A DNA stretch of 64,000 nucleotides from Ophelia neglecta (GCA_965285935.1 OZ260663.1:92876001-92940000); one strand, 5' to 3'. Counted from the stretch's first letter, positions 954-61,514 are shown. The notes: generated by a model from the sequence alone, not told the origin. Numbers and translations are program-made.

Positions 954-1026
954 GCGAACTTCCTGCTGTTATCCACTGTTCAGTGATCTCTAAGCACATG
1001 ATGAAGTCAATCAGAGGGCTAGCCAT
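954..1026 (-). CDS. G0: exon 1 (signal-peptide exon) of a further paralog whose remaining exons lie left of the window
   Basis: 73-nt phase-1 exon ATG..TCG C|GTAAGT encoding MASPLIDFIMCLEITEQWITAGSS. Same length, phase and ending as exon 1 of G1-G6, with the family upstream box at 1167-1241. Confidence 0.8.
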
Positions 1027-1166
1027 AGTAACACCTTGTATTTATCCAAATGCTACATTGTCTCAGGATTGTAATCCTTGCTTTGTCATAATCACTGGTA
1101 TTCCTAATGTTATAAACCACAGGCCATTGGGTGCGTATCCAACATAGAATTCTGTGTGAAACTGTG

Positions 1167-1241
1167 AGTGTCAGTAATATCAAAAACTCGATGTGCACCA
1201 GACCATGCAATGGGTGGCAATGACAGCGCCGGCGCAGTGCG
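1167..1241 (-). promoter_or_regulatory. Conserved upstream box (G0, short variant)
   Basis: + strand AACTCGATGTGCAC..GCAATGGGTGGCAATGACAGCGCCGGCGCAGTGCG, ~140-215 nt upstream of the ATG; homologous in all 7 minus-strand copies. Confidence 0.75.
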
Positions 1242-1740
1242 TACGATCGGCTCCCTTAATTTATTTTGCACATGTTTCCATCTCATATAATTTAAAATGT
1301 CAAAATGGCAATAGACTGGGGTTTGAACTAACACAGACGTAGGCTGATACCTGATATCGTTGAAATTAAATCTATGTAGTTTTCCTAAATGAGGTGGAGA
1401 CGGACAAGCTTGCCATTAACACAGATGCTAGAAAATACATTAAAAGATCCGCTGTTTTCAACTCATATATGATAGCACCTTTTCCCAAGACAGCAAGTTA
1501 TTCATTAATATTACAATCTGTTAGGATAGTAATTAAAGATTATATGTTTTATATGCACCGTGGTATATTTCCGATAGATGTTGTTAAAATAGGCATAGGG
1601 ACGCTTTCATTCCGTTGTTGTAAGTTGCGCCTGAAGGGATGACATTAATGCGATTACGACCAAAGAGGAGACATGGCATACTATGTATGAATAGTCACAA
1701 GTATATTAATGGATTGCATACAAATTTCGTTAACAAAGCG

Positions 1741-2182: not shown

Positions 2183-5100
2183 TCACTGTGGCTCAGTGTC
2201 AGATTCCATTTGTTCCTTTGGTGGTTCGCTGTCCAAATGGTCGTGCTCCGTGTCTAACTCGTGACAAAGCGGATCAGAGGTACCACTCTCACTGTGAGTA
2301 CGCCGTAAGAACGTCGGTGACTCATATTTATGTTCGGTGATAGGTGGTTTAAATATGGAACGGTTACCATGCTGTTGGTGGGTGCCGTGGACTATACGGT
2401 TCTCTGCGTCGGGGACTGACGTCGTGGGTGGAAAAGGGAGAGGTGAAAACCGTTCTCCTGGTGTCACGGCGGCCGGGCGCACAGCCATGTTTCTGTGAGC
2501 GGTCGTTGTATATTCCCGTCCGTGGGGATATTTCTGCGATCTTTCGTCGGAGACCAGCATGGGATCCAGCTCTTTAGCATAATATTGTGAAGGAGCCATG
2601 CCTTTTGCCGCCCCCATCTGCGGATCGGGCCTAGACGCGTTCACCATTTCATGTTTCCTATGATGAGAGAAAAGCAAAATATGTAATAACACTGTTATTT
2701 CATAGTAAAGTAAGATATTATATTAAAAAACATTAATAAATAACAAGTACATGGGTAGTACGCTGACACTTACCTTCGAAAACTTACAATACCAATCACA
2801 AGTATAGGAACTGCTATGATAGCGGCAGCGACTATAATCACCACAATCAGAATCCCTGAAATATGTTTCCATTGTAAAAATGTAACAGTATTTGAATTGA
2901 GCTAGGAATAATGAAAAAAAAATACCCAAATAAATATCACTAAATTGTAATATTTTCTCCTAATGGTAGGATATATTTATTAGTCAGTAAATAACGACTT
3001 CCCTATATGTGATATGAGCTACAATCCGCCACTCGCGTTGTTGCCTTCATCATTAATGGTGTTTCTGTTGAAATGGGTTTGTACTCGATTGCTTACATTG
3101 TGGTAGTTCCTGGGCACCATCCACCAAGTTACCGAAGGACATGGATGGTTCAACTGTAATAATACGGTACAGATTAATGTCGAATGACTTCTTTGGAACA
3201 TGTGATTCTTACTATTGTTAGTACAATATATTTTTTGACGCCATATAGCTCCTCAGAGAACTAAGCATCTTCGTCAAAAGCGCTTTTTGTATTCTTAATA
3301 GAAATATATTTGTTGGTTTGCTAAATATGAAAAGGCATGTTGAATTATTGTACAAACCTGACACGTTGCAATTCTTGACATCCCCTCCAGAGGTCCAGTG
3401 CATTCCATCGCATGATACTCGCCAGTTATTTCTGGTTTGGGTACATCTCACTAATATCTCAACCCCGTTTTGCTCGACAACAGCGCCCTCTGGTGGTATA
3501 TAAGCTGGGCATCCTATGCCTATGCCGTAGAGAATATATGTGAGATAGAACATATAGGATTCATTGTAAAGTGAAATGAAGTACTAGCAAGCCCAAATAT
3601 TTAATATATTTAATCAATATATGGATATAACATTCATAAATCATATATTAAACTCCAGTTACAACGAACGAGTTAAAAATGTAATTTACTCACTTTCATA
3701 ATGTAGAAGGAAATACGATGGACTTTGTGAGCGCATGGGGTCGGTCAAGGCGATTTGGAGGCGATCTGTCCCAGAGACGTACACTACATGCTTTCGTATC
3801 TCACCACCACAAATGGTGACTGTTCGTTCGCTGGATCCGGTGTGCCCTGTGTAATCATTGAATGGCTTTGATTTCTCCCAATTGATTGTTTTGTGTACTT
3901 TCTTAAGTATCATTTTTCATTGTACATGTATACCGTTCTAGCACGGCTAATATTTAAGTTACCTTCTGTGATCCTGGCATATATTTGACATACACCAGTC
4001 CTCTTTGGTAGTTGCATTCCAGACCCCGGACTTTCAGAACCCACCCCTTCAGGGATTAAAGGCGTCCAAACCCCGTAGTCATGTAAAGTGAGGCGGATCT
4101 TCTGTCCGGGGTAACCCTGGACCTCCCAGGGACAGCTGGTAGAACCTTGTCTAGTCTGGCCTGTGATGAAATTGGCCAGTAATCCACTTGTTTCGGGGAC
4201 TGATAGGAGGTTGTTTGTACAGGGCGTCGGTGATGTATAAACTGGAAGTAATTTCTCAATGAGTTTATATCAATTGTAGATATATCACTGTCAATGGCAG
4301 GAGTATCGTTAAAAGGTTTATATATGAGTAAAAAAAGTAAAGGCTGGCAGACCTGAAATAACTTAGGTGCAAAAACAAATTCGCATGGTTGGAATGAGAA
4401 CATGTGGTTTAGTTCAGAAAGAATATTTAAATGTTAATATTTGTTAACCTCACTTACCAGCTATGCAGTTGTATTGTAACTGTAGGTACGAATCCATACT
4501 CCTTAGGCAAGGGTTTTCTAGTCCGACGATCAGGTTTTGATCCGGGAGTGTCAGTTGACAGGTCTTTCTTCCAGAGCATACCGAGTCCATGTAGCTTAAA
4601 ACATCTACTTGGCATCTCGTGAAACCATTTCTATTCTGGCTTATACAGCTTCCTAATGATATCTGTCCGTAGTGCGCATTTTCCATCTGTATAACCTCGT
4701 TTTTTGCACAGCTAGCCGTAAAGGTTTTAAAGTTACAAACATCTTGTTTTTCTGCAAAATAAAATGTAAGCCCTTAATAGTGAAACATACCTGAGTTGGT
4801 AATAACTTTTGCTTTTCATTTCTTTATTTGCATTGCTAGTTTTTTTTACTGTTTGGGAGCTGTGGACTCGTGTGCGTGGGCTTGTGTATGCTGGTTCCGG
4901 GCTATTTCGGACCGATATAATGAACTAATCTTGGTTATTGATGATGATTGTCTACCGGGTATCAAATTACGTTTTCATATAGGATTTTCCTTTGTCTGCC
5001 GGGCATCCACTCTCATTATTTATTGATGATTTTCAGTTGTCTTCCTGGCATCCACATCCGTTTCGTAGAAGAAAAGTTCTACGCATCGCAATTTTACCAT

Positions 5101-8100
5101 TTAAAACAGTTAAATTTCCTTGACAACACTGTACATTAGTGTCAGTTTTTAGGGTTTTGGTAGAAATTCATTGCCCAGTTAAGCTGTTTAAAACTGTCCT
5201 CCATCGACATTGTTGGATTTTAGTAAAAAGTCTCGGGAAAAGGATGTTTATTTCTCCCTCGGCACTCCCTTGTCTTTTGAGCAGTAGGAAGCACTACAAA
5301 GTCCGATAAAAGCCAAGGAAGCTATTGTCAGGTTTTTCTCGAATTTTTCCCCACAGTTTAAAACTTCCCTTATAGCATGTAAGTCGATTTTCGAAACAAA
5401 CAGAAGCACCATTTCTAGTATGTTGTTCTTAAGCAATGTTTATCTAACTATCATTTGCTGGTAAAGATTTCACACGGAAACATTTGAGGAGAAAATACAT
5501 CCTATTTTTGGATACTGGATAATTAACTCGATACTCTTATTTCGCGAGAGTATTAATCATGATAGTTAGAGAGGGGGTGGGTGGTGTTTGACATATGAAC
5601 ATATTATCATGCAATTAACATTGCACTCATCCTGTTATCAATTGCTATCTATGCGTCGACTGTATTACATGCAGGGTAATTTACAGCAACTAACATTGGT
5701 AGTTGGTTCAATAGTGTGTTTTTGCTTGCGGGACAAAGTACATGCATCAGTCACTTGATACTCGGGAGCTTTAAACGCCGAGTTAAAGTTATGCTCTATG
5801 CGAGAGAGGCGGAAACGTTAATTTTAGGGTATCAAAAAATGTTGCGTCAACGGTCATTCCATCAAGGATGCATTTAAAATAAATACACACGTGTTATAAT
5901 TACGAGTAGCATTATTCTTGCAAAGCCCATATAGTGATGTTTAAGCGGTCCTTATAGACATATGCTATGACAATACGTCGCGCCTATGGGATCATGATCT
6001 GACTAGAAACTCGTGCTAATTGAGCATGGTTGATACTTGCAAATGATCTGTAGGAAAGTTGATTTAATAAGGCATTGAAATCGCAAAATGTGTCACCGCT
6101 CCGGCTTGAGTAGGGCAACCTGATATTCACCAACATAGCAAATATCATATGCTAACACCTACTTTGACATGGTTTAGCATGAGGTTAAACATTTAACCTA
6201 ATTTCATAGTCCTTTAGCAGTAAGGAACAAACCGGCTAGGATTATCAGCAGACTAATCAAAGTCTGTGATGAATGTATTACTTAAATTGGTGCTAAAAAC
6301 ACAAAGAAACCCGATGACTCATAGGACAAAACAGAAGTGCCAAGAATAAAAATAAGTTTGAACTAAATAAAATTTAAAATGACCTACTACGAAATGTAAA
6401 AATCGTTTTTTACAAAAATTTTAATTGAGATTTCTCCCGATTATATAAAAGTTAATGTTGCATTGTAGATGGGCTTTTGCCGGTGTATTGTAGTAATGCA
6501 ACCCGATTGAAATGTTGCACCTAGCCGGCTCTGAAGGAGAATACGGCTCCGCGCTACAGGGCGCTACACTACGCCGCGTTACGCCAAGGCGCCCCATGCG
6601 CAGAGGTGCCGGGCCGCGCTTCTCAATGACGGCAGTTGCCGTCAAGCCGACCATCTGAATTGGATGGCAGATAATGATGATGTTAGTATTTTACATATTG
6701 GATCCCTTTTTGATAATCGGATCAGCGCTTGTACAAAACCACCTTCTCACTGTGTCATATAAAAATGGACATTATGAAGTAAAAAAAATTAAACCTTTGT
6801 TGTGGCATCTTGTTTTGCTCAGTCAGGGGACCCTTCCCCTCCATGTTCTTTCCGGGTAAATTGTTAAATTTATGGCATTGACATCGCATGTTGCTTACCG
6901 CACATTGGGACATAATGTTAAATAATACAATTATGTTTCCGCCGAAATAACAAGTATGATGTGAAGCATTACCCACCAAGCGTTCTAGTACGTTAGCAGG
7001 ATCAGAATCCACACTCGTCAAATGGCTAATTAGTCTATTAATTACAAATCGTTTCTCTGCAAAATTATACTTTAACATATTAAAAAGTTAACAAATGTGC
7101 ACCGCAGAATTCCAATTAAAGGCAGTGCCGGGTTTTATAGGTTAAATACCATGCCACACATAGACAAATATTAACTTGTTCAATAATTCAGCCTTCTACA
7201 GGGGGCAGACACCCCTTTAGTTACAGAGTCGAAAGGATTAATCATTGATAACTACTCTGCATGTATGGGTTCAACATGCACTATTGCAGACAACTTCATA
7301 GAAATAAACTATTCTATAAATCCCTAATATCATTGAGACATAGTGGGACCAGTAACCCCAAAATTCTCCTGGTACATTTTGTCATATGCACGAGACTAAA
7401 AGGCACATCGATAATGCTCATCGGTGACAATTAATTTTCCCTTTGCATTATCCTAAGCAGTAAAATATAGAGTGACGAAGAGTAAGGACCAAAGGTCTGT
7501 AAGCAATACTTTGGATTAATAGTATCTTCCTTCTGTATCAGTATTAGCAGTTGCTCATCTCAGAAATGACACGAGGGGCTATTTAGCTAACAAATAAAAA
7601 CAGTTAACAAAAATGATACAAGAAATGATCAGTTAGCTTCAGAAACGGAAAACAGGATATATATCATACGCTTGATCCGAAATTACATTTGATGCCCTAT
7701 TCGCCACCGTAACACCTAAATTTATGATTGGTCTCACAGGCAATACCTTCTCATGCTATATATACGCCGTGTATGTCCGGAAGACAAACAAAAGACTGCG
7801 GATCAGGAATTTTCCAATTATCGGTCCTGGTTCATCCGAAATCACCGAAGATGGTATCAGAAGGCAAGATATGAAGGATGAATCACCATCAATGCCGAAG
7901 GTGATTAAATGTAAGGTTTTAATTTGAACAAGGTAAATGAAGATTTGTTAATCACCAAAATGCAATGGGATGTGGATTTTTCTTTGATACATTGTTGACA
8001 TCTTTTCGAATTGATTATCACGTTCAAGACTTTTTGGTTTTCTTTAAGTGATCATACAGTTGACTAATAACTGTGTTTAAAGCAATGTAATGTTATTATT

Positions 8101-9295
8101 CCTGATCATATAATTGTTTTATGTGCCGAGAATATTGTATTGTATTTTCCTTTATTATAGTGACTTGTCTTAGATACAAGGTCAGAATTCATCACACACA
8201 CACAAAAAAACAAAGAAAAGAGTAGACCCAGCCCTCTGGGCTTATAAGTCACTATTCACACTATTACAGGTATATAAACTGAGGCGGAAGGCAAAATACA
8301 CAATAATTCTAATTAAAATACAGAATAGCAGAATACAGATAATACACAGCACGAGGTCAAATGAATCCTAGAATTACTTATAATGTGAGGTACCATTTTT
8401 CTTTTCGCATGGAAAAGGCCCTATTTTGCTGTCTCTATTTGACAGCCTTTGAGATAAACAAACTTCTGAGTGACATCAGGGTTGTCAAACCCATCCATAA
8501 GACAGCAGGCATATGAATATATCAACCTGCGTTGATCCGAGAATAATCTTTTTACCGGGAAAGCCTGGAAGCCGAGCAATTATTTATATATTCCTTAGCC
8601 CCGTGTTTAGCAGAGCAAGTATATACGCTTAGCATCAAAAGGAATGTACGATAATAACCATACGTCTTTCCGGTCCAATCAGACAAACATTCCTTGACAA
8701 TTACGATATACAGAATTAAGATTTCATAACTTTCCCGCCATATTTAGTCCTTTATAAGATATAAATATGAGTGGGTAAAGGATGTAGGTGTGTGGGAGGG
8801 GGGGGGGGGGCATGGACAAATGCCATGGTATGCCACATAATTTAACATAATATGTATAGGATATCAGCAAATTAATTTTGATGGTGCCTGAAAGAATACA
8901 ACGTACGCGCTCACATAAATATGTCTGTTGAAAAAAGTTCTTACGTTAGCATAAGCATATCATAAATCATCATATAGAAAATACCCAAGGTGGAATTAAA
9001 GGCTCAGTAAATACCTTATTTCATTTCCAACAAAATAAATAATGCGACTTATTCAAGAATCTATGATGGATATAGTAAAACACATAGGAGCCTGTGTGTT
9101 GGCGGCGTCCTGTGAGCAATATTTAACACGTACTGTGTCTCTGACTCAGTAGGACTGGTAGAAGCCACGTATTATCGGTGCAAAATGGCGTAGTCAGCGA
9201 ATAATACATAAATAGCACTTACCCGATTCTCCAGCTTCTGTCCATGAAGCTATGGTCATTAGGGATAGAATAAATTCTTTCAGCAGAGCATCCAT
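2183..9295 (-). CDS. G1: SUEL-lectin/CUB-like/sushi-like single-pass membrane receptor, ~524 aa
   Basis: Exons 9295-9223 (MDALLKEFILSLMTIASWTEAGES), 4751-4458 (SUEL: C..C..AHYG..C..C..CSGR..C..PC..YL..C), 4241-3963 and 3846-3694 (CUB-like: CPWEVQGYPGQKIRLTLHDY, TICGG, FLLHYE), 3519-3358 (4-Cys sushi-like), 3153-3097 (stalk), 2855-2774 (TM), 2657-2183 (tail). All introns GT-AG, phases 1,1,1,1,1,1,2; total 1575 nt, open frame. Confidence 0.9.
6544..6619. promoter_or_regulatory. Conserved CpG-rich intron-1 element (G1)
   Basis: CGGCTCCGCGCTACAGGGCGCTACACTACGCCGCGTTACGCCAAGGCGCCCCATGCGCAGAGGTGCCGGGCCGCGC; homologs in intron 1 of G2-G6. Confidence 0.65.
9139..9222. promoter_or_regulatory. Conserved 5' intron-1 block with YY1-like (CAAAATGGCG) and AP-1-like (TGACTCA) motifs; G1 copy
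   Basis: CAAAATGGCG at 9181, 17392, 26312, 36486, 45927 (variant CAAAGTGGCG at 905). TGACTCA at 9142 and 17353, with one- or two-base variants in G3-G5. Confidence 0.55.
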
Positions 9296-9410
9296 TGTAA
9301 CACTTTTTAGTATATCCTAACGGTGCGTTTTCGCTTAATTCTCAGGATAATTAACATCGTATAATCCACAGCTAGTTTTGTGTGCATTTCACCTAGACTT
9401 CAGTCACAAA

Positions 9411-9507
9411 CTGGTAGTGTCAGTGTGAGAACTCGATGTGCACAGTACCGCGGCGCCGCGCAATGGGTGGTAAATACAGCGCCGGCGCAGCGCGCATCAC
9501 TCGCCGC
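9411..9507 (-). promoter_or_regulatory. Conserved upstream box (G1)
   Basis: + strand GTGTCAGTGTGAGAACTCGATGTGCACAGTACCGCGGCGCCGCGCAATGGGTGGTAAATACAGCGCCGGCGCAGCGCGCATCACTCGCCGC, ~115-210 nt upstream of the ATG. Confidence 0.8.
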
Positions 9508-10639: not shown

Positions 10640-13600
10640 TCACTGTGTCTCAATGTCAGATTCCGTTTGTTCACACGTTAGCTTCCTGTCAAATTGGGCG
10701 TGCTCCGTGTCTAACTCGAGACAAACCGGATCGGTAGTGTCACTCTCACTGCGCGTGCGCCTTAAGAATGTTGGTGACTCATATTTATGTTCGGTGACAG
10801 GTGGTTTAAATATGGTATGGTTACCACCCCGCGGGTATTGTCCGCGATTCATGGTCCCGTGGACTGCATGGTTCCCTGCGTAGGGGACGGATGCAGTTGG
10901 TGGAAGAGGCAATGGTGGGAACCGTTCCCCTTGTGTCAAGGGGTCCGGACGCACAGCCATGTTCCTCTGTGCTGTAGATGTATACTCCCGTCCTTTGGAA
11001 TATTTCTGTGATTTATCGTCGCATACCAGCATAGGATCAAGTTCTTTAGCATAATATTGCGGAGGAGACATGCATTTTGCCGGCCCCATCTGCGGATCAG
11101 CCCTGGACGCAATAATTGCGTCATGCTTTCTGTGAAGACAGAAATGTAAAATAACGCTTTTGTAAGATCATTTGTTTTGCCTCATACTTCGTGATCCTTT
11201 TATTGTTTTTTGGCAGTGCAAAACTCACAGGAGGATATAGTTATCTGATCATCAATCAAAAGTCTCAATATAAGTTAGTATTCTATGAAAACACATTGTT
11301 AATCAACTAGTGCATGGAAAAAAAACTGCCACTCACCTTCTAAAGCTTACAATGCCGATCACAAGTATAGGGACTGCTATGATAGCTGCAGCGGCTATGA
11401 TCACCACAATGAGAATCCCTGAAAGATATTCCCATGGTGGAAGAGTAAAACAGCATTTGAATTGAGTAATGAACAACGAGAAATTATATTACAAATAATA
11501 TTAATAAATAGTAAATATATTGATTCGAAATATTTTGTAAAACAAACAGGAATATGGTTTGCGTCATGTGTGTTGTTCGGTGTTTATCTTAAAATGTGTT
11601 TTCAAACGATGGCTTACATTGGGGTAAGGCCTGAGCACCATTCACCAGATTACCGAAGGACTCGGGCGGATCAACTGTAGTTATAAGACGTATATTACCG
11701 GCGAAGGACTGCTGTGCAACAAATTGACAGATAACTGTAATAATCTTAGTTTAATGTGAATATAATTGATACGACATAGATCCTGTGCAAACAGTTCATC
11801 GTCAACTATAGCGCATTTTGCATTCTGAATAAAAAAATATCTCCGCCGTTGTGAAGAATCGATTGTACAAACCTGACACGTTGCAGCTCTTGACCTGCCC
11901 ACTATAAGTCCAGCGCATTCCATCACATGACATTCGCCAGTCATTTCCTGTTTGGGGACATGTCACTAATATCTCATCCCCCTGATATTCGACAACTGCG
12001 CCTTCTGGCGGGATATAAGCTGGACACAATATGACTGTATCGAAGATAATGTAAATGAGGGTGAGAATGACATTGTAGATTAATTGATTTTTTTGTACCT
12101 TGAAGACAAGTACTAGCAACTTATATCGAAGAGCAATAAAATAGTCTGCGAACTTAATATGAAATCTACATTGTATATTTATATGCTTATGGTTATGTTA
12201 CATACAACGAGGAATTCAAAATGCAGTGTACTCACTCTCGTACTTTAGAAGAAAATACGCTGGATTTTGTGAGTTTTTAGGGTTGGTCAATGAGATCCGA
12301 ACGGTCTCTCTGCCAGATACGTATACTACATTTTCTCTAATCTCACCCCCGCAAATGGTAATGGTTCGTTCACTGGTATCAGAGAAGGGTCCTGCGCAAT
12401 CAATGTTTGAACGACTTTATTTCATCAAGTAAGCATGTTCTTAATACTTAAGTCTTAATCATTTGGAAAAAAAACTGTTTAATTGCGAATCTTTTAAACA
12501 TTGCTTCTTATCAAGTTACCTTCTGTGATCCTGGCATATATTTGACATATACCTGTCTTCTTTGGTTGTAGCATTGCATCTTCTTGACTATAAGAACTGT
12601 CCTCCTCGGGGTTAGAAGGATTCCACACACCGAAGTCATGTAATGTGAGGCGGACCTTCTGTCCAGGGTCTCCCTTAACCTCCCAGGGACACCTCGCAGA
12701 ACCTTGTCCAGTCTGCCCTGTGATGAAATTGGCCAGTAAGCCATTTGTACCATAGACCGATAGGAGGTTGTTAGTACATGGCGTCGGTGACGTATACACT
12801 GAAAATAATGGCAAGGTTTAAAACAATTACCGATAGGTATGCGGGTGTCAATAAAGAGACTGGATGAAAATAGAACCACCATTTAGACAGGGGGCCACCT
12901 ACCAGGCGTACAGTTGAATTGTAAATGTAGGTATGAATCAAGATTCTTTATGCAAGGCTGATTTCCAGCGACCAGGTTTTTATCCGGAAGTTCAAGCTCA
13001 CATGTCTGTCTTCCAGAGCAAACCGAGTCCAAATAGCTGAGCACATCTACTTGGCATCTTGTGAAACTATGTGTGCCCTGCTTTATACAACTTCCAACAG
13101 ACATCTGTCCGTAGTGCGCTTGTTCTATCTGTATAACCTCATTTTCTACACAGCTAGCCTGAAATTTTTTCCAGTTACAAACATCCTGCTTTTCTGCAAA
13201 AGCAAAAAGGAATCATGTAAGTTTAATATTGGAACGTTTAATTGGTCCTGATGATGTGTATGCATATTTGTTACTAACTTTAGACTTTACCGCCTGTGAG
13301 TTCCAAGTACATATAAATGAAAGAGTAACCGCAGTGTACATTTATATAGCACATAGGAGAACAGCAAAAAATTAATTTATATACTATAATACTCATTCCT
13401 GACTGTTTTAACATATTATTTATTTATTCAAATTATTCTGAAGCCTTATACTTTAGTATATAGTTCACAAATCTATTGAGTACGAGAACGAATTACATAA
13501 AACCTGGTTTTTTACCGAGCACGCCTTATAGACGGCATTTAATACTGAAGTAAATTCGTGCTCTAAAAGTATACAAATTGAACACATATCACTCCTATAT

Positions 13601-46157: not shown

Positions 46158-46253
46158 CTGGCAGTGTCAGTGTTAAACTCGATGTGCACAGTAGCGCGGC
46201 GCAATGCAATGGGTGGTAAATACAGCGCCGGCGCAGTGCGCATCACTCGCCGC
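46158..46253 (-). promoter_or_regulatory. Conserved upstream box (G5)
   Basis: Near-identical to the G1/G4 box at the same distance from the ATG. Confidence 0.8.
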
Positions 46254-48290: not shown

Positions 48291-48323
<33 letters not shown>

Positions 48324-51300: not shown

Positions 51301-54300
51301 TTATCTGCTTTCAGGAGTGCAGTCACAGTCACATTTTCGAAGAAGACGATCATGTGTCATTCCCTGAATTATGACTAAGAACAAATCGACTTTCTGCTAG
51401 GAAGTGATTATTAGTTTCAGAGAATGCCACCAAGAGGACTTCCAGCGACTTATTCTCAATAATAGATAGGCAAATAATGTATCCTAATACAATCCATTTA
51501 GGTTTTGCATATAAGTTCTTCAGATACGAATGATTTACTATTAATTAGGTGCAGTTATTCTTTGCAAGCTCTAATCAGGGAAGTTAGGTTTAGATTAGTG
51601 ATCCTGTTTCCTCTTTAACTTTCAAGGATGTTTTCCATCCCGCATTAGGCACATGTATATTCAGAAACATTCGTCTGTAGTCTCGCATTTTTGAGAGAAA
51701 TTCGGCAATCGTAGACTCTTTTCATGCATGTTTTATATTCAATCTATCTTGACCACTGGCGCGTTTGCTGTGTTGTATGCCTTAAATCACTAACACTAAT
51801 GTGGACTATGCCAACATGCAAGTGATATATGATGTAAGTTAATAAATTAGCCGGCTTCATCTCTTTACAAGCATATTTACCGTTATGGAACCAGTGGGAT
51901 ATAATTTGCGGGCCTGCAGCTGACGGCTCCTTATGATTTCGAACGATCTCATTGGAAAATTCTTGATTATATGATTTCATTTGTCTGCAGGGTATCTACA
52001 GTTTGACAGGTGAATGGATTTATGCGAGGACAATGCCGGTGCAAAATTAATGGAAGTCCTCTAGTCGGAAAGTTCTCCCAGTCAATTTTAACTTGTACTA
52101 ACCCAAAGCAGGGTGTCCCCGGTCTTTAAAGACTAGCATTCCCCGGTATTGAAACACAGGTCTACTTAGGATCCGTTCCCCAAATCAAGATTTATGGCTT
52201 CCCCCGTTCTTAAATTACTGGCATAGTGCGTCCGCAAGGGATTATTACCCCCAATAAAGGATGGTATAATAAGCATGATATATGTGGGAAGCTAATAGGT
52301 GTGTTTAGTAATGCCTTATAGTTTACATACTATACAGACCGGATACCGCTCCGAGTAGGTCGTGTATCTATTGTACGATCGTTGCAAGTTTTTGTAGTAG
52401 GTTAGGTGCAATTACAACGTAAGATATGGCAATGCTTTCTCTGTTTGTGCTCAGGGGCGAAATGTTAACCCCTTTTTCTATATTAATGCAAGTTTTCTAG
52501 AGAAAATAAGGAATTGTTAATTTGACTCAATCATGATAATTGACTGAACAAATTTATAAGTGGTTGAACAATCAGCAGTATATCTAATTTTATCGCACAT
52601 ACATCATTGTAATCCTGTCTCGGCGGATATATAGAGTAAACATACAAAGTAATATAGTTGCCACTGGCGTCATTCATAGAGGAAACATTTCGTGACAAAT
52701 CGCTTAATAATTTCATGACGCACACAATCGCCTTCATCTTGTTCACAACTTCCACCCCCTTTGGGTATTACTGGATGACTCATCATATGATAATAAACAT
52801 TTGAAACCACGAATAATATTGAGGTCATATGGTATTGTACATAAGCCGATTTACACACAAAAAATTGGATTTTGTCTGTGAGCAATTACATCTGCTAGGT
52901 CAAATGACAACAGAGTGTATCTATTCATGTTTGACATGGCTTCAGTTTGACATAAGCTCGGGTGGAAGCTGATTTTATTAATTAAATATGTAGCTGAAAC
53001 AAGTACTGAAATGGGAATTCATAGGCGGTAGCAATGTGGATAAAGTTCTAGCCAGTACCAACAATATTAAATGTGTAAATGAAGGAATGGGTCTGTTTTA
53101 ACAGTTGATACCAAATGCGGCCTGGCCATGTTGCAACAAAAATAACTATAGGTCAAAACTGATACCCTGGCACTCAGATTGTGCTGTCAGCATTGCCTTC
53201 GATTTAATCTATTTTATGACTTGGATGTGTCACGAGTAAATTCTTAGGAAATACCTTTTTGTACATAACATTTCCGAACAAGATTTGACACGGCCTCTAG
53301 AGACATTGCCACGAGACGCTTCACCATACAGCGCACAATGCAAAGCCTAGCCGCGCTACGGCTCTTCGCTCAACGCCGCGCCTGGCAAAGTCGTGCGTTC
53401 GCTCCAACAACGCTTCCGAGTAGACACTGTATGGGGCTACATGGAGTCCTACTAGTTCGTGTTGGCTAATTACAGTCCATCTATTCAACCATCGAAATAG
53501 CTCGCATGCTATATAATATGTGATGTGTTTCCATAAAATATAAAGATTGAAACAAAGTGCAATGTTACCACTTCGTTCAGACCAATTTTCAGGTGAAATG
53601 CTTTACGACACATACCAGGGGTATATCAGATACTTGTCACTTTATGGGCTGTTAAGAGCACTGACAGCAAAGTCAAACCTGATGATTGAAGAATCATAAT
53701 TTTGGAAATAGTTATAGGACTTTTTTACACCTCGAATCTGATTTATAATATGAACATGTTTAATGTACCCAGACATAATACATGTAGTTCCTATGGTATG
53801 AAAATAAGTATGCATGTAAAGTGCAGTTCGTATCAGCATATTAAGAAATACCAATGAACGTCTTAAAACGTTGAACGGTGTAGATGTCTATAGGTGAATA
53901 TGAAGGAATGTAAGTTAATGATGATTATAATTCCTTTAATCCAAGCATCGCATATTAGAAATTTGCATGGGAAAATGCTCAATATTGTTTGTTTGTCTTG
54001 ACTACCATACGTGTTCCGATTTGTTATGTCAAATATTTAAAACCAGTAGCGTGTAAAGTCCCACGCTCCAATTTCATTATAACTACAGCAGCGTTTAGTA
54101 CTTTGTAGAAACACTAAAATATTTTACAGATTAAACAGTTTATCGTGTTACTAATTAGATCTACTTCTGATCGTGACTATACAAAAGAATTGTCCCTTTT
54201 TACATTTAAAATGTGCAGACCAGTTGATTGGATTGGGTAATTGGGTGGATAACTGTGTGGGCCTTAGTGTGTCTTTAATTTGAATATACATTATATGTTG

Positions 54301-56012
54301 TTACCAGAACTATTTTAGATGTATATAAACATGGAGTCCTAGTACCAATAAAATGTTATTGAGCTCTATTGCGTTATAAACCTCTCTAGGTGGCTGGATC
54401 AGACCTCTTTGTTCTGACCAAAAAGCATAAGTAGAGGTTGATAAAAAGTTATTCGGTCTATAAATTGGTAATATGGTTTTTTAAACCTTCATATTGCAAA
54501 CATCGTGTCCATTCTTGGAACCTACTGCATTTTTGTAGTAGACCTCAAATATTGAAGGATTTAGTGTGGACATATCTTTCCAAGTTGTGAGGTTATGTTT
54601 TCAACATTTAATACCGTTTTCTAGTTTCGATGAAATGATAGAGCTCCAACAGAATATGTTGGATGGTGATCTGTCATTGGTAGGCGTCACAAAACAGTGG
54701 GTACTCTTTCTTTAGAAAGATAAAAGTGTCTAAAAAGCGCAAACGAGATATGATTAGTCGTCTAACCAGTTTAAATGATAGAACTCATATTTGTCGTAGG
54801 TCCAGGTATAGTCTAAATTTGACCAACCTATGCAAAAATGACGCATCAGGGGACGCCTGGCCAAACATTATAAATGACGTAGTTTGAAAAAGAAAAAGGA
54901 GACTGGAAATCGAAATTCGAATTAAGGACGGAACAGGATAAATATGTGTTTTTAACAAGCATGCATGTACCTAATAAATAAATAATCATGGGATAACACA
55001 TGATCTTGGAACCAATATGTTCAATATGGCCTACGTAAAATACAGAAAACACGTGTCAAATTTAAAACAATTAAATGGGATATTAGGAAAGGGGCATTGG
55101 GAAAGTTGGTCAAACATTTCATCCATTAATGCTACTATATACTTATCTGTGATTTTTAAGAATATATCCCTAAGCATTGGTGAATTATTCAATGGTTATT
55201 GAATTATCACTTCAATGGCTTACAGACGTAAAAATGGGGAATAACTTAATACCATAACGGACTAGGATATAAGATTTTCTTCTTCGACGGTATCATATTA
55301 CTAACGCACTTTAATGATTTCACCAAAGTAATCGGGAAGTAAAATAAAAGCTTACATAATGAATAATAATCTACTTTCAGTTGATAAAACTTGAAAACTG
55401 GACCATGATATTATTAGTATGATATCAAGTTATGTTTTTATTATTCATTAAACGCGCACCAATAAACATCCTTGAAAATAACATGAACATAAGTCACTGG
55501 ATGCTAGTACGGATTAAGTAGAAGAACATTGTTGAAGGGGGGGGGGGGGTGTTGCGATATTAGTCTATTTTAAAAAGTGACACATCAGAAGCTCTATGAA
55601 TTACATTTCTGCTGGAAATTATTTACAAAAATGCCAGTGTCACATGCAAATATACATACATTTGAATACACGTGTTTGCCTACATAATTACCGAAGGGGA
55701 ATGGACACGGCCATATTTCTTTAGCATTAACAATGTGGGCGCAATTGGGTTAGTATTTGCATACGATAAACTGCACAGTAAAGACGTTACATGAAATAGG
55801 AATAACTAGCAGTGCGGCCCATAATGGCATGATTGTTTTAATCGAAGTATATGCTGCATATTCAAAATATGGACGAGCTGGTAGATACTTGTACAAAAAA
55901 GCGTTCGTGCTCAGTAGGTAAAGACTAGGTGTTACTTACTGGAGCTGCCTGCTGCTATCCATATCGCCATGATTGCACAGCTCAAAAAGAGATCTTGCAG
56001 TAGCGTATCCAT
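47123..56012 (-). CDS. G6: divergent SUEL-lectin/CUB-like/sushi-like single-pass membrane receptor, ~535 aa
   Basis: Exons 56012-55940 (MDTLLQDLFLSCAIMAIWIAAGSS), 50994-50707, 49931-49653, 49101-48958, 48667-48506, 48283-48227, 47996-47915, 47645-47123. GT-AG; total 1608 nt, in frame. Retains the canonical SUEL YGR motif. Confidence 0.9.
48295..48322. repeat. (AT)n microsatellite next to the G6 stalk-exon acceptor
   Basis: About 14 AT units read directly from the sequence. Confidence 0.9.
53315..53382. promoter_or_regulatory. Divergent CpG-rich intron-1 element (G6)
   Basis: ATACAGCGCAC..GCCGCGCTACGG..CAACGCCGCGCC at the same distance (~2.55 kb) from exon 1. Confidence 0.45.
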
Positions 56013-56145
56013 TTAAACGAATATAATATAACAATTCTCACATACCAACTATCCAGGAATTTATTTTATAATAATATCCTCGTATTATTTTGTTGAAATT
56101 CCTAGTGCATAATGCTTGTGTTCCGCCTAGAAATCCCGCACACAG

Positions 56146-56226
56146 CGGTAGTGTCAGTATCAGAACTCGGTGTACACAGGCCAATGGGTGGTAAATACAG
56201 CGCCGGCGCAGCGCGCATCACTCGCG
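56146..56226 (-). promoter_or_regulatory. Conserved upstream box (G6, short variant; lies between divergently oriented G6 and G7)
   Basis: CAATGGGTGGTAAATACAGCGCCGGCGCAGCGCGCATCACTCGC is identical to G1 although the G6 protein is divergent; lacks the CGCGGCGC sub-block. Confidence 0.8.
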
Positions 56227-58247
56227 AAATGCACATGGACATAATCAGTGTTAATGTGGATGTAAATTCGTGGACTCACAATAGCAATAGTCACTAAGCT
56301 TTGGATGAGTCGAGGATAGTATTGGGAATGAAAACCCCTGTTCACTCTGTTATAAATGTAACTGAGAGGAGCTTCTCTCAGTGGGCAATTAAACATTTCT
56401 AAAATAGCACCGAGTACATGTATATAATTATTTTAAATTAAATGAGGTCACATTGCTTTTGTTCGTTTTTTCCTTATGTATATTGGAATCATCCTTAGTA
56501 GTTGAGCTCCCAATACGTTAGATCAGAATTATAAGCTATTTGATAGAATGTTATTGTCATTGTGTCTAAAGATTTTATTGTTTATAATCAGAAATGGGCA
56601 CCTATTTACTCTAGTTGTATCAGAGATGTAACGTGTTGGGCTCCTATTGGTAACAAAGTGGTAATCAACCGTATTGAGTTAGTATGTATATGCTAAACTA
56701 TATATGAATTTACGTTTTTGCCTAAATTTGTGCGACAATAGCACATATGTACACAACGGAAAAGATTCGGTTTTCTGCCAAAACAGTTGTCATCATTTAA
56801 CAGTAGTTGTCTTCTTGGCATGAAACAATGCATTTTGTAGAATCTGAAGATAATCTTAAATATGCATGGTCAGGGGCAATACTTTATTTATATAAAACAA
56901 ACACAATTGAACAGGAATAGTCCATAAATTCGGTCAAAAATCATCATGAACGATCAGCTGCAGGTCTACAACCACCAATCCTCACTATGTTCCAGTTAAA
57001 ATGGTCACAAGTATCTTTTTCTGTTTTCAATTGCTAAAAGTGATATGTTATATTGATGATTACTAATGATTTACAAAGTTAGGACTCAACTTGTTCTACC
57101 TAAATACACAAATTAACTAGGAGGTATGCATTGTACAGAGGGTGAGTGATGTTGTTTTGGATTATCATCTTATCTATTTTATTTTATTTACATTTTTTTT
57201 TTGTAGATAATTACCTTTTTACATGAAAATAGGGGACATTTTAAGTACCCAATCTGGTTGCTATGAATATATTTAATACTGTAAAATCTGATAGTTTAAT
57301 TTGAATTGTTCATAAATATCAGGCGGCACTCATGGACTACGAGTAATGGTCAGACAGTTTTGTAATCAGCCTTTTCTTTTCATACGCGTATATTTTTAAT
57401 CTATACTCAACTAGAGCTGCACTATAAATATTCAACTTATGTGTTACATTCAAGTCAACATTCGAAAACAACTGAAAATAAAACACGTTTCGGATGTGTT
57501 ACCAAGGGCATTCATTGTCAAGTATCATTCACAAACATTATAAAAAAGAAAGATTTGAAGAGTCAAATTACACACAGAACACGTCCCAAATCTGTACGCA
57601 TGTAGCTTGGTGCATATGGGCCGATTTTCTTTGCAATCCCCCATCTGTGAGGAAGAGAGATGTTTTCGTCCTAAGAAGTGCCTCAGCTTATAAATGTAAT
57701 AACAGGCCAATCAATTGAGATTTTCACATTTCATTGACGAGTTAAGAATCAAAAGTGATTCTAAACACCATATGGTCTAAATGCTACCCTGATATCCTTC
57801 TACGCCCAGATGCGTGGGAGGTATTATCATTGCCTAGAAATATCTGCAAAATCCTAATTGATTCCTGCGATATATTCTCCAACCCCGCAGAGGACAATGT
57901 TCCATTTATTAAGGCGCATGTAACAAAATGTAACAACATGGAATACCTCTGTTACTGTGTTCCGAACACATGATTGTCATAAGTAACTAGTTGGTTGTTG
58001 GAGATGAGCCATAACAGCTTTGTCAAACCGTTTTGTTCTGGTAAAGCCAGTGACGATGGTTTGGACTATGCCTGTAACAGAGGACGTATTGATACAATCA
58101 TACTTATTAGTCGTACCTAATAACCTGCGTTGCTAAAAAAATGGTTAGTTATTTGAACAATTAAAATAGAATAGTGTCCACTGAACCTCTGGAGCTTACA
58201 GTGGATAAGGGGATATCGATACCTTGCATTAAAACATATTCTGGACA

Positions 58248-61200
58248 ATGATATTACTGTCTGCAAGCTTTAACATCAAATTATTAGAAACATTTTCGCC
58301 TTTAACTGGTGAGTGGTAAACTATAAAACAATATGAATTTAGCCTGTATTAGTGTCCTCCACCTCAAATTTCTGAATTGAATGTGCTATTGCTTTCTCCG
58401 TTATGCCTACTACATACACTATGTCGTCTTTCTTGTTAGGGGAGCAGGATGTTTGTAATTGGACCACATTTAACGCCACCTGTGCACATAACGAAGTTAT
58501 TCAGATGGTGCATGCGCACTACGGAAGGATGTCGGTAGGACGCTGTTTACCACAGGGTTTAGGGTACATAGGCTGTAAACAAGATGTGTTGACCTATTTG
58601 GACGCTGTTTGCTCGGGGAGACAGACATGTCAGCTAGAGTTGCCCAACAAAAACCTAGCCGCCACACAGCAGGCCTGCCCACCAGGACTCGAGTATTACC
58701 TACAATTAGAATTCAATTGCATTTCTGGTGAGTTAAATGCATAATGCAATTAAGCAAATTATTTCTTTCAGATTTTCGCTATTTTATTTGTCAAAGACGG
58801 ACATACTTAACGCTTCACATAGAAAAAGCAGCATTTAGTAAGTGATCACCTCCTATTCATGGGTTTTGAAGTGTTGGTATACTATTTTGATCATATTGTT
58901 TTATAATATGATGTAACAGTCAGATCACGTACATTGTTGAATTGGCATATATCAAAAATCAAAAGCCTTGCGACGTTGTTAGTCCCCGATAAGTCCACCG
59001 ATACCAAGACCTTCCAATGTACTTTGCTTAAAACCATCCGACATTTATTAAAGTAGCTTCGACCACTCTACTCTGTTATGATGCATATTTTTCTTTGCAC
59101 CAAGCTTTAAGCTGCAGAAAGAGTCTCCTTTTCTATTGCTACCAGTTGGTGGACTTGATTATTGTGAGTTTGGACAATTATATAAGTGCATTAATCATTA
59201 CGTTAATTTCATTCAGTTCACGCCTCATCAACACCGTGTGGCCAAGACTCTCTGCCGGTCCTTGGAACACAAGGTTTGCTGGCCAACTACATCACGGGAA
59301 GTACTGGCCAGGGATCCCCGCGGTGTCCTTGGGAGGTTCACGGCTCCCCTGGACAGAAAATCCGCCTCACATTACACGACTTTGGAATTTGGAGGCCTTC
59401 CAATTATGCAGGGGGCGAAACTGGAAGTTTGAAACCCGGGACCAGGCTACCAACTGGGTCGGACGTATGTCATATATACGCCTGGGTAACGGAAGTCACG
59501 TCGAGCTATAGGAAACATCGTATGTTTATTATTTTCGTTGTAACGCAGACGTTTTGAGTTCCAATACACCTACTTAAATTTACATATGTTAACCAGCAGG
59601 TACAAATGAGAGTGAACATTGAAAATATTACCTGTCTCAATTCGATTTAGGTGATATCGGTAAATGTAATTTTCCATTTACTATTATCAATATTAAGCGG
59701 ACAAAATACACTGTAAGAGTTCTAAGTGTAGCCAATTTATTACATCTCTGCATTTAGAAGCGTCTATGAAGCGTTCTATTACCTTGTGTGGGGGAGAAAA
59801 GAGAGAGAAAGTAGTATACTTATCGGAGATGGAGGGCGTTCAAATTGCTATTTCGAACCCCGAACACTCCCGAAACTCGGCGTATTTTCTAATTGGTTAC
59901 GAAGGTAGGTAAATCGTTTTCATTTGATAATTTTTAAGCGTATGCACAAAATGCCTTCTTAAGTATTGAATATATAGAAAGAGAATATTTTCGCAAGAAT
60001 GTCTTCTAACCATTCTTATAACTTATTTTGCTATTCAAGTTATTCATACATCGAATGCATAATGATTTAAGTAATGAGTGGTGTTTTTATTACAAGTCAT
60101 AGGGTGCCCGACTTACATGCCTCCTGAAGGAGCTGTGATCACGCAACAAGAAGGGGAAATTATTGTCAAGTGTACCGACACCGGAAGGGAGTGGCGTGTG
60201 TCATGTGATGGAATACGCTGGACCTCAGTAGGAGAGAAAACGACCTGCATCGACCCAGGCATAGGTTTGTATAATAAAAAGATGTGATTATGCGATGACC
60301 CAAACATAACTTGTATAAAAATCGATACAACTAAGTTTGCAATTGAATGTTTATGACTTCTTTCGATTAGCTTTATGACTCGACTTTTATTTAACATATT
60401 CGCAATAATACATATCTATCTGTTTTAGGTGTGGAGTCTTTGTCCATCGGAAATGTGTTTAAGAGTGCTCTGACATTACCGCAATGTGAGTCTTTGTTTG
60501 TACATGTTCGTTCATTAATGTAATATTACATGTCGGGTGTTGGATTGATTACGTCATATAAGTACCTCTTGCCGTACATTCAACAATATACTTTTTAATT
60601 TAACCTTGCTCTTTGTTCATTATTTTTGGGATATTATTCATTAATTGTGCGACTTTCTTCAGGGATTCTGGTTGTGATAATAATAGCGGCTGCCGTTATC
60701 ATAGCTTTCCCTATAATTCTGATTGGTATTCTAAGTTTGAGACGGTCAGTGCATATTTTATCAAGCATTTAACTATCACATATACATAAGTTAATTTTAA
60801 AATGTCAAGTATAGCAATGCACACTGAAAATTACTCATATTTGCAAATGAGTGTTTGTCTCTCATTGCTTAATCAACAATGACTCGTCCGAGAAAATGAT
60901 ACCACAAAATAAATGTTATCAATCTTGCATGCATGTTATAATAGAACCGTGTTCATGACAGGAAACATGACGCGGTGATTGTGAGTGAACTAAATACCCA
61001 GGTGGACGCTGAGAAGCTCATGTTTCATCCCGCATCTGCTGTTGGAGAGCTCGATCCGATGCTTGCCAAAACCAAGAGATCACAGAATACTATCAGAGAC
61101 AGGGAGTACGCCTCCAATGAACAAAGAAACATGGCTGTGAATCCTGGCGCCATGGCATCTAGTGCAGAATTTCCACATCTGCCATCACCGCCCATTGCTC

Positions 61201-61514
61201 AAAAGGCTGGTCATTGTACCATTCACAGAAACCATAGTCACAAAAGAAATAAGAATGAACAATATCCGCAAGATGAAAATCATTCTATTTTGAAACAGTC
61301 ATGCATCGAACATAAGTATGAATCGCCACCGGTGCTTCAGGGCACTCGCAGTGCGAGAAACCCATTCTACCACGAGTTGGACCCAGAGCATAATGATATT
61401 CTTACTGGGACAATGCAGGAACCCCAGAAGTCTGCTGCCGTGACGCTTTGCTTGGATACAAACATGTCTTCAACGTCTTCTGTCTTTTTACCATTCTCGA
61501 GTCAAAGAGTCTGA
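58248..61514 (+). CDS. G7: inverted paralog of the same receptor family, ~552 aa (first exon and the exon-3 donor uncertain)
   Basis: Exons 58440-58727 (SUEL), 59217-59519? (CUB part 1; homologous donor at 59496 absent, in-phase GTATGT at 59520), 59758-59904, 60097-60264, 60429-60485, 60663-60744 (TM), 60962-61514 (tail). Candidate non-homologous phase-1 leader exon 58248-58308, MILLSASFNIKLLETFSPLT G|GTGAGT. Confidence 0.75.

Follow-up and report, generated by a model that had tools for sequence, protein, structure and literature searches.

The window (the whole stretch analysed, 64,000 nt of Ophelia neglecta, GCA_965285935.1 OZ260663.1:92876001-92940000) carries the SUEL, CUB, sushi-like and tail exons in seven complete sets, found when four exon translations of one copy were searched against it (tblastn, E 1e-17 to 1e-64). 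Six intact 8-exon genes (A to F, 523-535 aa) lie on the minus strand; G is an inverted gene body. A further minus-strand copy (copy 0) is represented by exon 1, its remaining exons lying beyond the left end of the window. Features are listed in Table 1. The minus-strand start codons (1026, 9295, 17506, 26424, 36600, 46041 and 56012) are spaced 8269, 8211, 8918, 10176, 9441 and 9971 nt apart. All six spacings of the original prediction are exactly reproduced, and its six intact copies, exon 1 of a seventh and one inverted copy are recovered; the tandem cluster that it described, coding for diversified membrane proteins of type I, is confirmed.

Table 1. Genes, exons and relics of the array, by position in the window; exons of minus-strand genes are given from 5′ to 3′.
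Feature	Position	Strand	Exons	Remarks
Sushi-like pseudo-exon fragment	215-322	-		in-frame stop; within intron 1 of copy 0
Copy 0, exon 1	954-1026	-		signal peptide, 73 nt, donor GTAAGT
Copy 0, promoter core	1185-1243	-		1-2 mismatches vs consensus
Gene A	2183-9496	-	e1 9295-9223; e2 SUEL 4751-4458; e3 CUB-a 4241-3963; e4 CUB-b 3846-3694; e5 sushi 3519-3358; e6 stalk 3153-3097; e7 TM 2855-2774; e8 tail 2657-2183	524 aa; promoter core 9430-9496
Gene B	10640-17710	-	e1 17506-17434; e2 13193-12903; e3 12798-12520; e4 12391-12236; e5 12034-11873; e6 11674-11618; e7 11418-11337; e8 11129-10640	529 aa; promoter core 17644-17710
Gene C	18963-26627	-	e1 26424-26352; e2 21865-21572; e3 21183-20914; e4 20726-20583; e5 20376-20215; e6 20006-19950; e7 19742-19661; e8 19452-18963	523 aa; promoter core 26561-26627
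Gene D	27337-36803	-	e1 36600-36528; e2 31678-31388; e3 30254-29976; e4 29803-29648; e5 29434-29273; e6 28777-28721; e7 28508-28427; e8 27820-27337	527 aa; promoter core 36737-36803
Gene E	38675-46242	-	e1 46041-45969; e2 41933-41643; e3 40804-40526; e4 40442-40287; e5 40160-39999; e6 39679-39623; e7 39414-39333; e8 39167-38675	530 aa; promoter core 46176-46242
Gene F	47123-56217	-	e1 56012-55940; e2 50994-50707; e3 49931-49653; e4 49101-48958; e5 48667-48506; e6 48283-48227; e7 47996-47915; e8 47645-47123	535 aa; promoter core 56164-56217, with 13-nt deletion
Weak, unrelated candidate exon 1 for G	58248-58308			near G
Gene body G, inverted	58440-61514	+	e2 58440-58727; e3 59217-59519; e4 59758-59904; e5 60097-60264; e6 60429-60485; e7 60663-60744; e8 60962-61514	exons 2-8 only
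Decayed promoter/exon-1 module	61952-62255	+		438 nt downstream of G stop

Alignment of the seven gene bodies (MAFFT) gives eight exons per gene with identical boundaries. The common exon structure originally attributed to all copies applies to A to F and does not extend to G, which lacks exon 1. In A to F, AG/GT is found at every intron, exons contain no in-frame stop and the CDS sums (1575, 1590, 1572, 1584, 1593 and 1608 nt, respectively) are each divisible by 3; across these six copies all 42 introns are canonical and all frames open, despite a dS of 0.5-0.9. Each unit is 8-10 kb long and consists, in order, of a promoter core, a 5′UTR (presumably about 150 nt), a signal-peptide exon 1 (73 nt), an intron 1 that is uniformly long (4.0-4.9 kb) and whose initial ~97 nt are also conserved, seven short exons, a stop codon and polyadenylation signals. 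The encoded order is SUEL, CUB (over two exons), sushi/CCP-like module, 19-residue stalk, TM helix and ~160-residue tail; extracellular exons are all phase 1-1. Polyadenylation signals are found 120-400 nt past each stop and the next promoter core 709-1871 nt past it. With these elements, the 8-10 kb units each form a complete transcription unit; intactness and constraint are what suggest that any copy is transcribed. Tail exon, stop codon and polyadenylation signals are present separately in every gene, so that constant exons common to all units, of the protocadherin kind, do not occur. Variable-to-constant exon splicing, as at a clustered-protocadherin-type locus, is thus ruled out, and the protocadherin analogy of the original prediction fails on this defining point.

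The frame of G is intact (1598 nt) and closes with a 73-nt exon 1; neither the promoter module nor a homologous exon 1 was found in its upstream region. G has also lost the conserved exon-3 donor, a GT 24 nt downstream preserving the frame. In the decayed module downstream of G, the aligned start position has no start codon. With the losses of G, this module and the pseudo-exon, some birth-and-death turnover in the array is real.

The promoter core is an 85-nt GC-rich sequence with a TATA-like TATTTA, found in each unit 175-191 nt (about 180) upstream of the ATG (7/7 minus-strand units). Seven matches are found in the window, all on the minus strand, vs 0 expected (100 shuffles). It is the most conserved sequence of the cluster: 91% identity in A-E and 87% across all seven, compared with 70-78% in domain exons, 88% in the TM exon, 43-53% in flanking DNA and about 50% at synonymous sites. 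Identity across the module is patchy (65-95%), which argues against the uniform tract that gene conversion would leave. A search of related loci (339 kb in all, of which 9.4 kb lie upstream of the gene in the sister species) gave no match to the core, and its function thus has no cross-species support. The claim that every copy has its own conserved cis-module stands for the intact copies, each with a promoter/exon-1 module, and falls for G. A shared element is as compatible with uniform co-expression as with stochastic choice.

The SUEL exons of D and G match Pfam PF02140 (36.0-36.1 bits; cutoff 31.4), as do the homologues L001 and L002 (32-38 bits). PDB profile search gives SUL-I (3.6e-17) and the C. 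elegans LAT-1 lectin domain (2.9e-10); CSL2 and latrophilins are also among the best solved relatives. The eight Cys columns are invariant (9/9 sequences). Eight conserved cysteines (four disulfides) are a trait of rhamnose-binding lectin (RBL) domains, and the DPC and KYL motifs are conserved in most RBL sugar-binding domains (PMC10817417). Both sugar-site motifs are absent from 9/9 family members examined: the DPC position reads N/Q/R-PC, TC, LC or AC and the KYL position S/A/Y-YL throughout. An intact YGR is limited to F, G and the outgroups L001 and L002, A-E reading YGQ, YGL, YGH or FGQ. Because DPC and KYL are absent, the SUEL domain may bind a protein, or else a glycan of an unusual kind.

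The CUB and sushi identities rest on cysteine patterns and on moderate fold-search scores of predicted models. CUB (PF00431) remains below the Pfam threshold for exon 3 alone (E 0.16-0.27, 12-13 bits; cutoff 21.4), and the single-exon homologue L001:5438-5941 gives no PF00431 match. Four Cys are conserved over exons 3 and 4, and the best three proteins in the PDB profile search are all CUB proteins (cubilin, 0.0036; enteropeptidase; PCPE-1). The AF2 model of the single-exon homologue (pLDDT 64.5) retrieves mostly CUB domains with Foldseek (E from 1.5e-3, for MASP-1 CUB2; TM 0.45-0.59), further matches including TSG-6, spermadhesin and Neto2. The CUB domain is considered, with moderate confidence, divergent but real; it contains an insertion of ~25 residues that varies between copies. 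Sushi (PF00084) gives no Pfam match at E<=1, and the PDB sequence-profile search gave spurious matches only. In this module C3, C25, C36, C50 and W41 are invariant; its AF2 model (pLDDT 86.5) has as best folds the MASP-1/2/3 CCPs, CR1 CCP16, Crry and factor H, with E of only 0.2-1.7 and a probability of 0.7-0.93 for the best (MASP-1/2/3 CCPs, CR1 CCP16). The three ectodomain modules initially proposed are thus retained: SUEL on Pfam and PDB profile matches; CUB, missed at the Pfam threshold, on four Cys, CUB-only profile matches and CUB folds heading the Foldseek list; and sushi, also missed by Pfam, tentatively as "sushi/CCP-like" on four Cys, the invariant Trp and CCP fold matches.

In the tail, Tyr motifs (EY-T/A-S/T-T and H-K/I-YESP) are invariant, and a Pro-rich motif (FPPLPxPP) is also present. 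The conservation initially reported for the TM segment and signalling motifs is seen in the alignment of the copies and, for the tail motifs, also across species. Tail exons give no FAM176/EVA1 match at E<=1 (Pfam), and no characterised family with this tail was found. Identical exon order is seen in other invertebrate-like contigs, together with the tail motifs in the homologues L001, L002 and L003; the order SUEL, CUB, sushi also occurs in metagenome contigs. In the tree, the seven copies of the window are monophyletic (support 100/99), with L001 as sister. As they form one clade, the expansion is lineage-specific, in line with the original prediction. The sister-species locus has one copy, with no neighbour copy in 9.4 kb upstream, and no tandem pair of full genes was found in the fetched contigs of related organisms. 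The domain combination had been reported as unrecognised; likewise, no named or characterised relative was found, nor this domain order and tail under any name, in searches that covered parts of the proteins and may have missed a full-length architecture match in annotated proteomes.

Identity between paralogues is 50-71%, and it is mainly the loops that differ; F is a divergent paralogue (~50% aa identity vs A-E). dS is 0.5-0.9 within A-E and saturated vs F and G. Introns are no longer alignable between copies; exons and promoter cores still are. On these values the copies are old. dN/dS is 0.16-0.35 in each domain exon, and the tail changes at the same pace as the ectodomain; by this measure all domains are under purifying selection. 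The sliding-window maximum (1.13) falls in one disordered CUB loop, and no other segment nears 1. That surface loops differ in every copy is correct as a description, but such ratios give no sign that they do so adaptively: the proposed check of dN/dS per domain yields no evidence of diversifying selection, all ectodomain exons being within this range and one loop near neutrality.

The locus is likely to be a tandem array, specific to its lineage, of independent paralogous genes for animal type I membrane receptors, whose family is uncharacterised. This family is real and probably functional. Repeated duplication of whole units, with some decay, would have built the array, and the same trans-acting factors would drive all intact copies. 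SUEL and CUB surfaces would bind extracellular ligands; in our own reading of CUB topology, the single hypervariable insertion would sit at the canonical ligand-binding loop. In many CUB domains, ligands are bound by way of a Ca2+-binding acidic triad. Judging by the tail motifs, signalling would use tyrosine phosphorylation and adaptors of the SH2 or proline-motif type. By analogy with other expanded invertebrate receptor or lectin families, the paralogues may be sub-specialised for related ligands. The most likely setting is innate immune or environmental recognition.

EVA-1 is a co-receptor for the secreted cue Slit. Accessory receptors of the EVA-1/EVA1C or Neto/SOL type, in which a SUEL and CUB ectodomain would act as a secreted-cue co-receptor or as an auxiliary subunit of another membrane protein and have been duplicated for tissue-specific use, are unlikely here. 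The architecture does combine SUEL with a single TM segment, the best SUEL matches include the lectin domains of latrophilin and LAT-1, and the fold matches include Neto2 CUB domains; the canonical sugar-site motifs are absent, as is possible in protein-binding latrophilin-type lectin domains, and the Tyr and Pro-rich tail motifs, which we take to be reminiscent of guidance-receptor tails, are counted on the same side. However, EVA-1 has two SUEL domains and is not known to have CUB or CCP, the tail has no FAM176/EVA1 match at E<=1, and a developmental co-receptor would not usually be expanded sevenfold in tandem. Quite unlikely is a protocadherin-like identity code, in which the shared promoter element would allow stochastic or combinatorial choice and the ectodomains homophilic or matching recognition (neuronal self-avoidance, allorecognition, symbionts). 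Constant exons are not shared, each unit being a complete gene; visible isoforms number only 6-8; the tail evolves no slower than the ectodomain, without a diversifying-selection signature; and the single copy seen at the sister-species locus (no neighbour within 9.4 kb upstream) and the lack of a tandem full-gene pair in fetched contigs also count against it. Exclusive choice is also no better prediction from identical promoters than co-regulation. A promoter core at a fixed ATG distance and conserved beyond the coding sequence, seven or more paralogues with loop-concentrated differences, and conserved TM and tail motifs that would suit a common output, speak for it. Overall, the "recognition code" reading gains little support from sequence.

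That the array is decaying or non-functional, made of unused duplicates whose apparent conservation reflects recent duplication or gene conversion, is very improbable. Such decay is seen in G (no promoter or exon 1, splice donor lost), in the module at 62 kb and in the pseudo-exon, whereas the six intact copies keep 42/42 canonical introns and open frames at a dS of 0.5-0.9, every exon has a dN/dS well under 1, alignment is still possible for exons and promoter cores but not for introns, and the module is patchily conserved, unlike a conversion tract.

The array of independent receptor genes can be compared with several known systems. It shares with SUEL/L-rhamnose-binding lectins (sea-urchin SUL-I, fish CSL, latrophilin/LAT-1) a PF02140 match above threshold and the eight cysteines; here the domain, without DPC and KYL and with YGR restricted as above, is the N-terminal module of a membrane receptor, vs a soluble lectin or GPCR. 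As in the CUB-CCP pairs of MASP/C1r/C1s and in the CUB-sushi membrane proteins SEZ6 and CSMD, a CUB fold is directly followed by a putative CCP-like module, encoded by phase 1-1 domain exons, and MASP-1 is the best fold match for both modules; in contrast, protease, EGF and repeated CUB/sushi arrays are absent, the CUB diverges too far for a Pfam match and includes the variable insertion, and neither the SUEL head nor the tail is related to those proteins. C. elegans EVA-1 and vertebrate EVA1C are likewise type I membrane proteins with an N-terminal SUEL-type domain; both have two SUEL domains and are not known to have CUB or CCP, whereas one SUEL exon per gene is found here, with no FAM176/EVA1 match in the tail at E<=1. 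Vertebrate clustered protocadherins resemble the array in their same-strand tandem units, each with its own promoter and a conserved element at a fixed start-codon distance; this is an analogy only, the element being unrelated in sequence to cadherin genes, neither cadherin repeats nor spliced constant exons occur here, and nothing in the sequence points to promoter choice. Invertebrate lineage-specific tandem expansions of mosaic lectin/receptor genes share with it a species-specific paralogue clade, birth-and-death relics and shuffled phase-1 domain exons; the array differs from them in a domain order and tail found under no name in the searches made and in a promoter core conserved beyond the coding sequence.

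A single gene family fills the window. The DNA is gap-free, has 32-41% G+C in 2-kb windows and is of eukaryotic, animal type. Four exon translations of one copy were searched against the window with tblastn. They identified seven complete sets of SUEL, CUB, sushi-like and tail exons (E 1e-17 to 1e-64), six on the minus strand (genes A to F) and one on the plus strand (gene body G). Self-comparison of the window gave a block of about 430 nt that is repeated seven times, each time about 4.4 kb upstream of a SUEL exon. Once aligned, this block comprises a very conserved upstream element, a 73-nt ATG-initiated frame and the conserved beginning of the next intron; the frame encodes a signal-peptide-like product and terminates at a GTAAGT donor. 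Alignment of the seven gene bodies gave eight exons with the same boundaries in all, and every extracellular exon is of phase 1-1. All 42 introns of genes A-F carry AG/GT, the exons contain no internal stop and the six CDS totals are all multiples of three (523-535 aa). Intron 1 measures 4.0-4.9 kb in six of six genes; the other introns are of 83-1133 nt. An AATAAA or ATTAAA is found within 120-400 nt past each stop, and 709-1871 nt separate the stop from the promoter core of the next gene. Each unit, having its own exons, stop, polyadenylation signals and separate promoter core, thus stands as a gene of its own. Nothing in the window pointed to any further gene: the nine ORFs outside exons have no Pfam match. 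All searches and fold predictions were run exon by exon. The start-codon spacings of the original prediction were reproduced exactly from the gene models.

Exons of the receptor genes and positions of the features discussed in the text (positions are those of the window unless a locus is named)
Feature	Position	Strand	Size	Content or remark
Exon 1			73 nt	signal peptide
Exon 2			288-294 nt	SUEL
Exons 3 + 4			270-303 + 144-156 nt	CUB in two pieces
Exon 5			162-168 nt	sushi-like
Exon 6			57 nt	stalk
Exon 7			82 nt	TM helix
Exon 8			475-553 nt	tail including stop codon
Sushi exon fragment	215-322	-		weak tblastn match, 47% identity over 36 residues
Exon 1 of the gene cut by the window edge	954-1026	-
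Intron 1, two examples	4752-9222; 31679-36527	-
Tail exon, example from A-F	27337-27820	-		third Tyr motif lost
Junction between F exon 1 and G	56400-58439
Candidate first exon of G	58248-58308			weak, unrelated
Gene body G	58440-61514	+		exons 2-8
Tail exon of G	60962-61514	+		third Tyr motif kept
Decayed promoter/exon-1 module	61952-62255	+		438 nt past the stop of G
CUB exon of locus L001	5507-5935			single exon
SUEL exons of locus L075	346-627; 1463-1729			one strand, 0.8 kb apart

The edges of the array are less regular. The inverted copy of the original prediction is present as a plus-strand gene body, but it consists of exons 2-8 only and has neither a promoter module nor a homologous exon 1. 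Its reading frame would close given a 73-nt first exon. No such exon or module was found in the 2.4 kb between G and F exon 1, nor elsewhere upstream on the plus strand (tblastn with the exon-1 peptides, nhmmer with the module), and a scan for ATG-to-donor segments gave a sole candidate. The conserved exon-3 donor is lost in G; a GT 24 nt downstream preserves the frame. The junction between F exon 1 and G contains no module, exon-1 homologue or Pfam-recognisable ORF and looks like an inversion breakpoint within the former first intron of G. The core motifs of the decayed module beyond G are mutated yet recognisable, and there is no ATG at the aligned position, which suggests that a plus-strand sub-array runs on past the window and is degenerating. 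At the other edge, a sushi exon fragment with a stop codon in place of the invariant Trp lies in intron 1 of the edge gene, of which the window contains exon 1 alone. The defects of G, the decayed module and this fragment thus indicate birth-and-death turnover at the array edges.

Only SUEL is detected by Pfam on exon translations; CUB and sushi were therefore tested by profile searches against PDB and by fold. The SUEL assignment is solid: PF02140 scores over the Pfam threshold, a profile of nine family members retrieves the sea-urchin lectin SUL-I (3.6e-17) and then the lectin domains of LAT-1 and latrophilin, and all eight cysteines are invariant in these nine members. The motifs YGR, DPC and KYL are reported to be characteristic of rhamnose-binding lectin domains (PMC10817417). 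Unlike in these domains, DPC and KYL are missing in all members here and YGR is kept only in F, G and the outgroups (relatives from outside the window), so canonical sugar binding is doubtful. For CUB, Pfam gives E-values of just 0.16-0.27. In the profile used instead, the single-exon CUB of L001 (a homologous locus in another genome) was the reference row and the window half-domains were aligned as separate fragments; the top three PDB proteins by score are all CUB proteins (best: cubilin, 0.0036). AlphaFold predicts this domain with moderate confidence (pLDDT 64.5), and the Foldseek list of the model is almost all CUB: MASP-1 CUB2, TSG-6, spermadhesin, Neto2, cubilin, PCPE-1, neuropilin. Together with four conserved cysteines, the profile and the Foldseek list led us to accept a divergent CUB. 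It carries an insertion of about 25 residues, modelled with low confidence (residues 72-85, pLDDT <50), which is the most variable stretch of the protein. The CUB is encoded by one exon in L001, is split by a phase-1 intron in all window copies and is split elsewhere in L002/L003 (two loci of another organism); intron positions within CUB have therefore shifted during the history of the family.

The module encoded by exon 5 is probably sushi-like. It has no Pfam or sequence-profile support; the 53-residue exon gives a confident fold (pLDDT 86.5) that is structurally closest to CCP modules of MASP-1/2/3, CR1, Crry and factor H; the E-values are weak, as is normal for a domain of this size. The module has four invariant Cys and one invariant Trp. 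The TM exon codes for a run of 23 hydrophobic residues with basic residues after it, hence a type I topology. Tail motifs kept across species are KE-x-Y/D-PML, an invariant Tyr in E/D-Y-T/A-x-T, a Pro-rich stretch and an invariant H-x-Y-E-S-P. A third Tyr motif, P-F-Y-H-E-L-D/E, is kept in G and all outgroups and lost in A-F, where A-E have Cys and F has Phe at the Tyr position. The expanded clade thus lacks one putative phosphorylation site.

Relatives were sought with the tail and the SUEL exon. A homology search with the tail exon among proteins, whose length window left out full-length kin, gave no match. A seven-tail profile searched against 1.84 billion representative proteins retrieved only nine short ORF fragments, none of them named. 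Three of their source contigs were read. L001 (extended as L084; ENA ERZ25069296) contains one gene with the order SUEL, CUB, sushi, stalk, TM, tail. L002 and L003 belong to one organism (GCA_013332715.1, ERZ23486763) and contain a version compacted to 3.5 kb, in which SUEL, CUB, sushi and tail exons are ordered as in the window; stalk and TM exons were undetected there. Another contig with a tail homologue (ENA ERZ25070167, P0003) carries, 2.5 kb downstream, a long retroelement ORF pair (RVT_1, RNase H, integrase), which fits the genome of a eukaryotic host, not a microbial contig. An alignment of three SUEL exons, used to scan JGI metagenome contigs, gave 183 related stretches, several of which are followed by CUB and then sushi exons, ordered as in the window; no tail of the fragment proteins was detected in these loci. 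Related contigs of this set come from the Ga00561xx, Ga00491xx, Ga0209xxx and Ga01263xx samples, and no contig retrieved in the analysis had a human appearance. The sample series is presumably host-associated, from gutless marine oligochaetes. One metagenome contig, L075, has two family-type SUEL exons, which could reflect either a relative with two SUEL domains or a closely spaced duplication. Literature searches on the SUEL/CUB/sushi combination found nothing relevant.

All seven window copies group together in the SUEL exon tree (100/99), L001 is sister to this clade, and the metagenome sequences fall into several paralogue groups of their own. The array is therefore a lineage-specific expansion, in which F and G branched off earliest and A-E afterwards. 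The A-E proteins are 65-71% identical to one another, and F and G are each about 50% identical to all others. At synonymous sites, divergence reaches 0.5-0.9 within A-E and is saturated in wider comparisons; introns are now unalignable save a few patches of about 70%. Within A-E, dN/dS per exon ranges from 0.16 to 0.35 (ectodomain, 0.19-0.29; tail, 0.35), with 0.04 for the TM exon. The tail is thus not under tighter constraint than the ectodomain. In 12-codon windows, the CUB insertion alone reaches about 1.1. The regime is one of purifying selection with relaxed loops; diversifying selection is not demonstrable from these sequences.

Conservation of the module (promoter core, 5'UTR, exon 1 and start of intron 1) is patchy. 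Identity among A-E, followed by that among all seven modules, is 91% and 87% for the 85-nt promoter core, 84% and 75% for the first ~97 nt of intron 1, 71% and 61% for the 5'UTR, 75% and 67% for exon 1, and 49-53% and 43-53% for flanking DNA. For comparison, SUEL, CUB, sushi, stalk and tail exons are 73-80% identical among A-E and 65-71% among the seven gene copies A-G (TM exon: 88% and 83%); synonymous sites are about 50% identical. Such patchiness points to selection at particular sites and speaks against a gene-conversion tract. Within the core are a TATA-like TATTTA and the perfect palindromes GCGCCGGCGC and TGTGCACA; the CCACCCATTG motif of the core precedes the ATG by 175-191 nt. In the conserved opening stretch of intron 1, GCCATTTTG occurs and, in A and B, also TGAGTCA. 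Scans of the window for Rfam families and tRNAs gave no hit; the module is therefore no known RNA gene. Assignment of the core to NRF1, ZNF143/SBS, CTCF, YY1 or AP-1 sites was dropped, the resemblance to these motifs, judged by eye, being partial. At E<=1, the promoter module had no match in L001/L084, where 9.4 kb upstream of the sister gene were covered, or in any of the 82 related loci.

The evidence best supports a tandem array of autonomous, apparently functional paralogues of an uncharacterised receptor family, which would be co-regulated via the conserved promoter. Any assignment of ligand type, signalling route or expression pattern would be inferential. Stochastic choice among paralogues is possible but unlikely. 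Its most specific form is given very little credence: the promoter core and conserved intron-1 start would act as a choice element and any given cell would switch on a single paralogue or a few of them, giving an invertebrate code for cell-surface identity or non-self recognition made of SUEL-CUB-CCP receptors, not of cadherins or Ig domains. Lineage-specific expansions of lectin-type receptor families are common in invertebrate genomes, and an ordinary co-expressed family of this kind would be one more. If the family is as it appears, animal cell-surface biology gains a receptor architecture not described before: SUEL lectin-like head, divergent CUB with a variable insertion, CCP module and conserved tail with invariant tyrosine motifs, found in several invertebrate-like genomes with independent expansions in different lineages.

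For the study of promoter evolution, the cluster further offers a small natural experiment. The 85-nt core is still about 90% identical in seven copies despite half-saturated synonymous sites and unalignable introns. It is a short, defined element with which to find the binding factor and to distinguish co-expression from exclusive choice. The analogy with clustered protocadherins made in the original prediction holds only in that both systems consist of tandem units, each with a conserved promoter element; it breaks down over the shared constant exons, which are absent here, and the selection analysis adds nothing to it.
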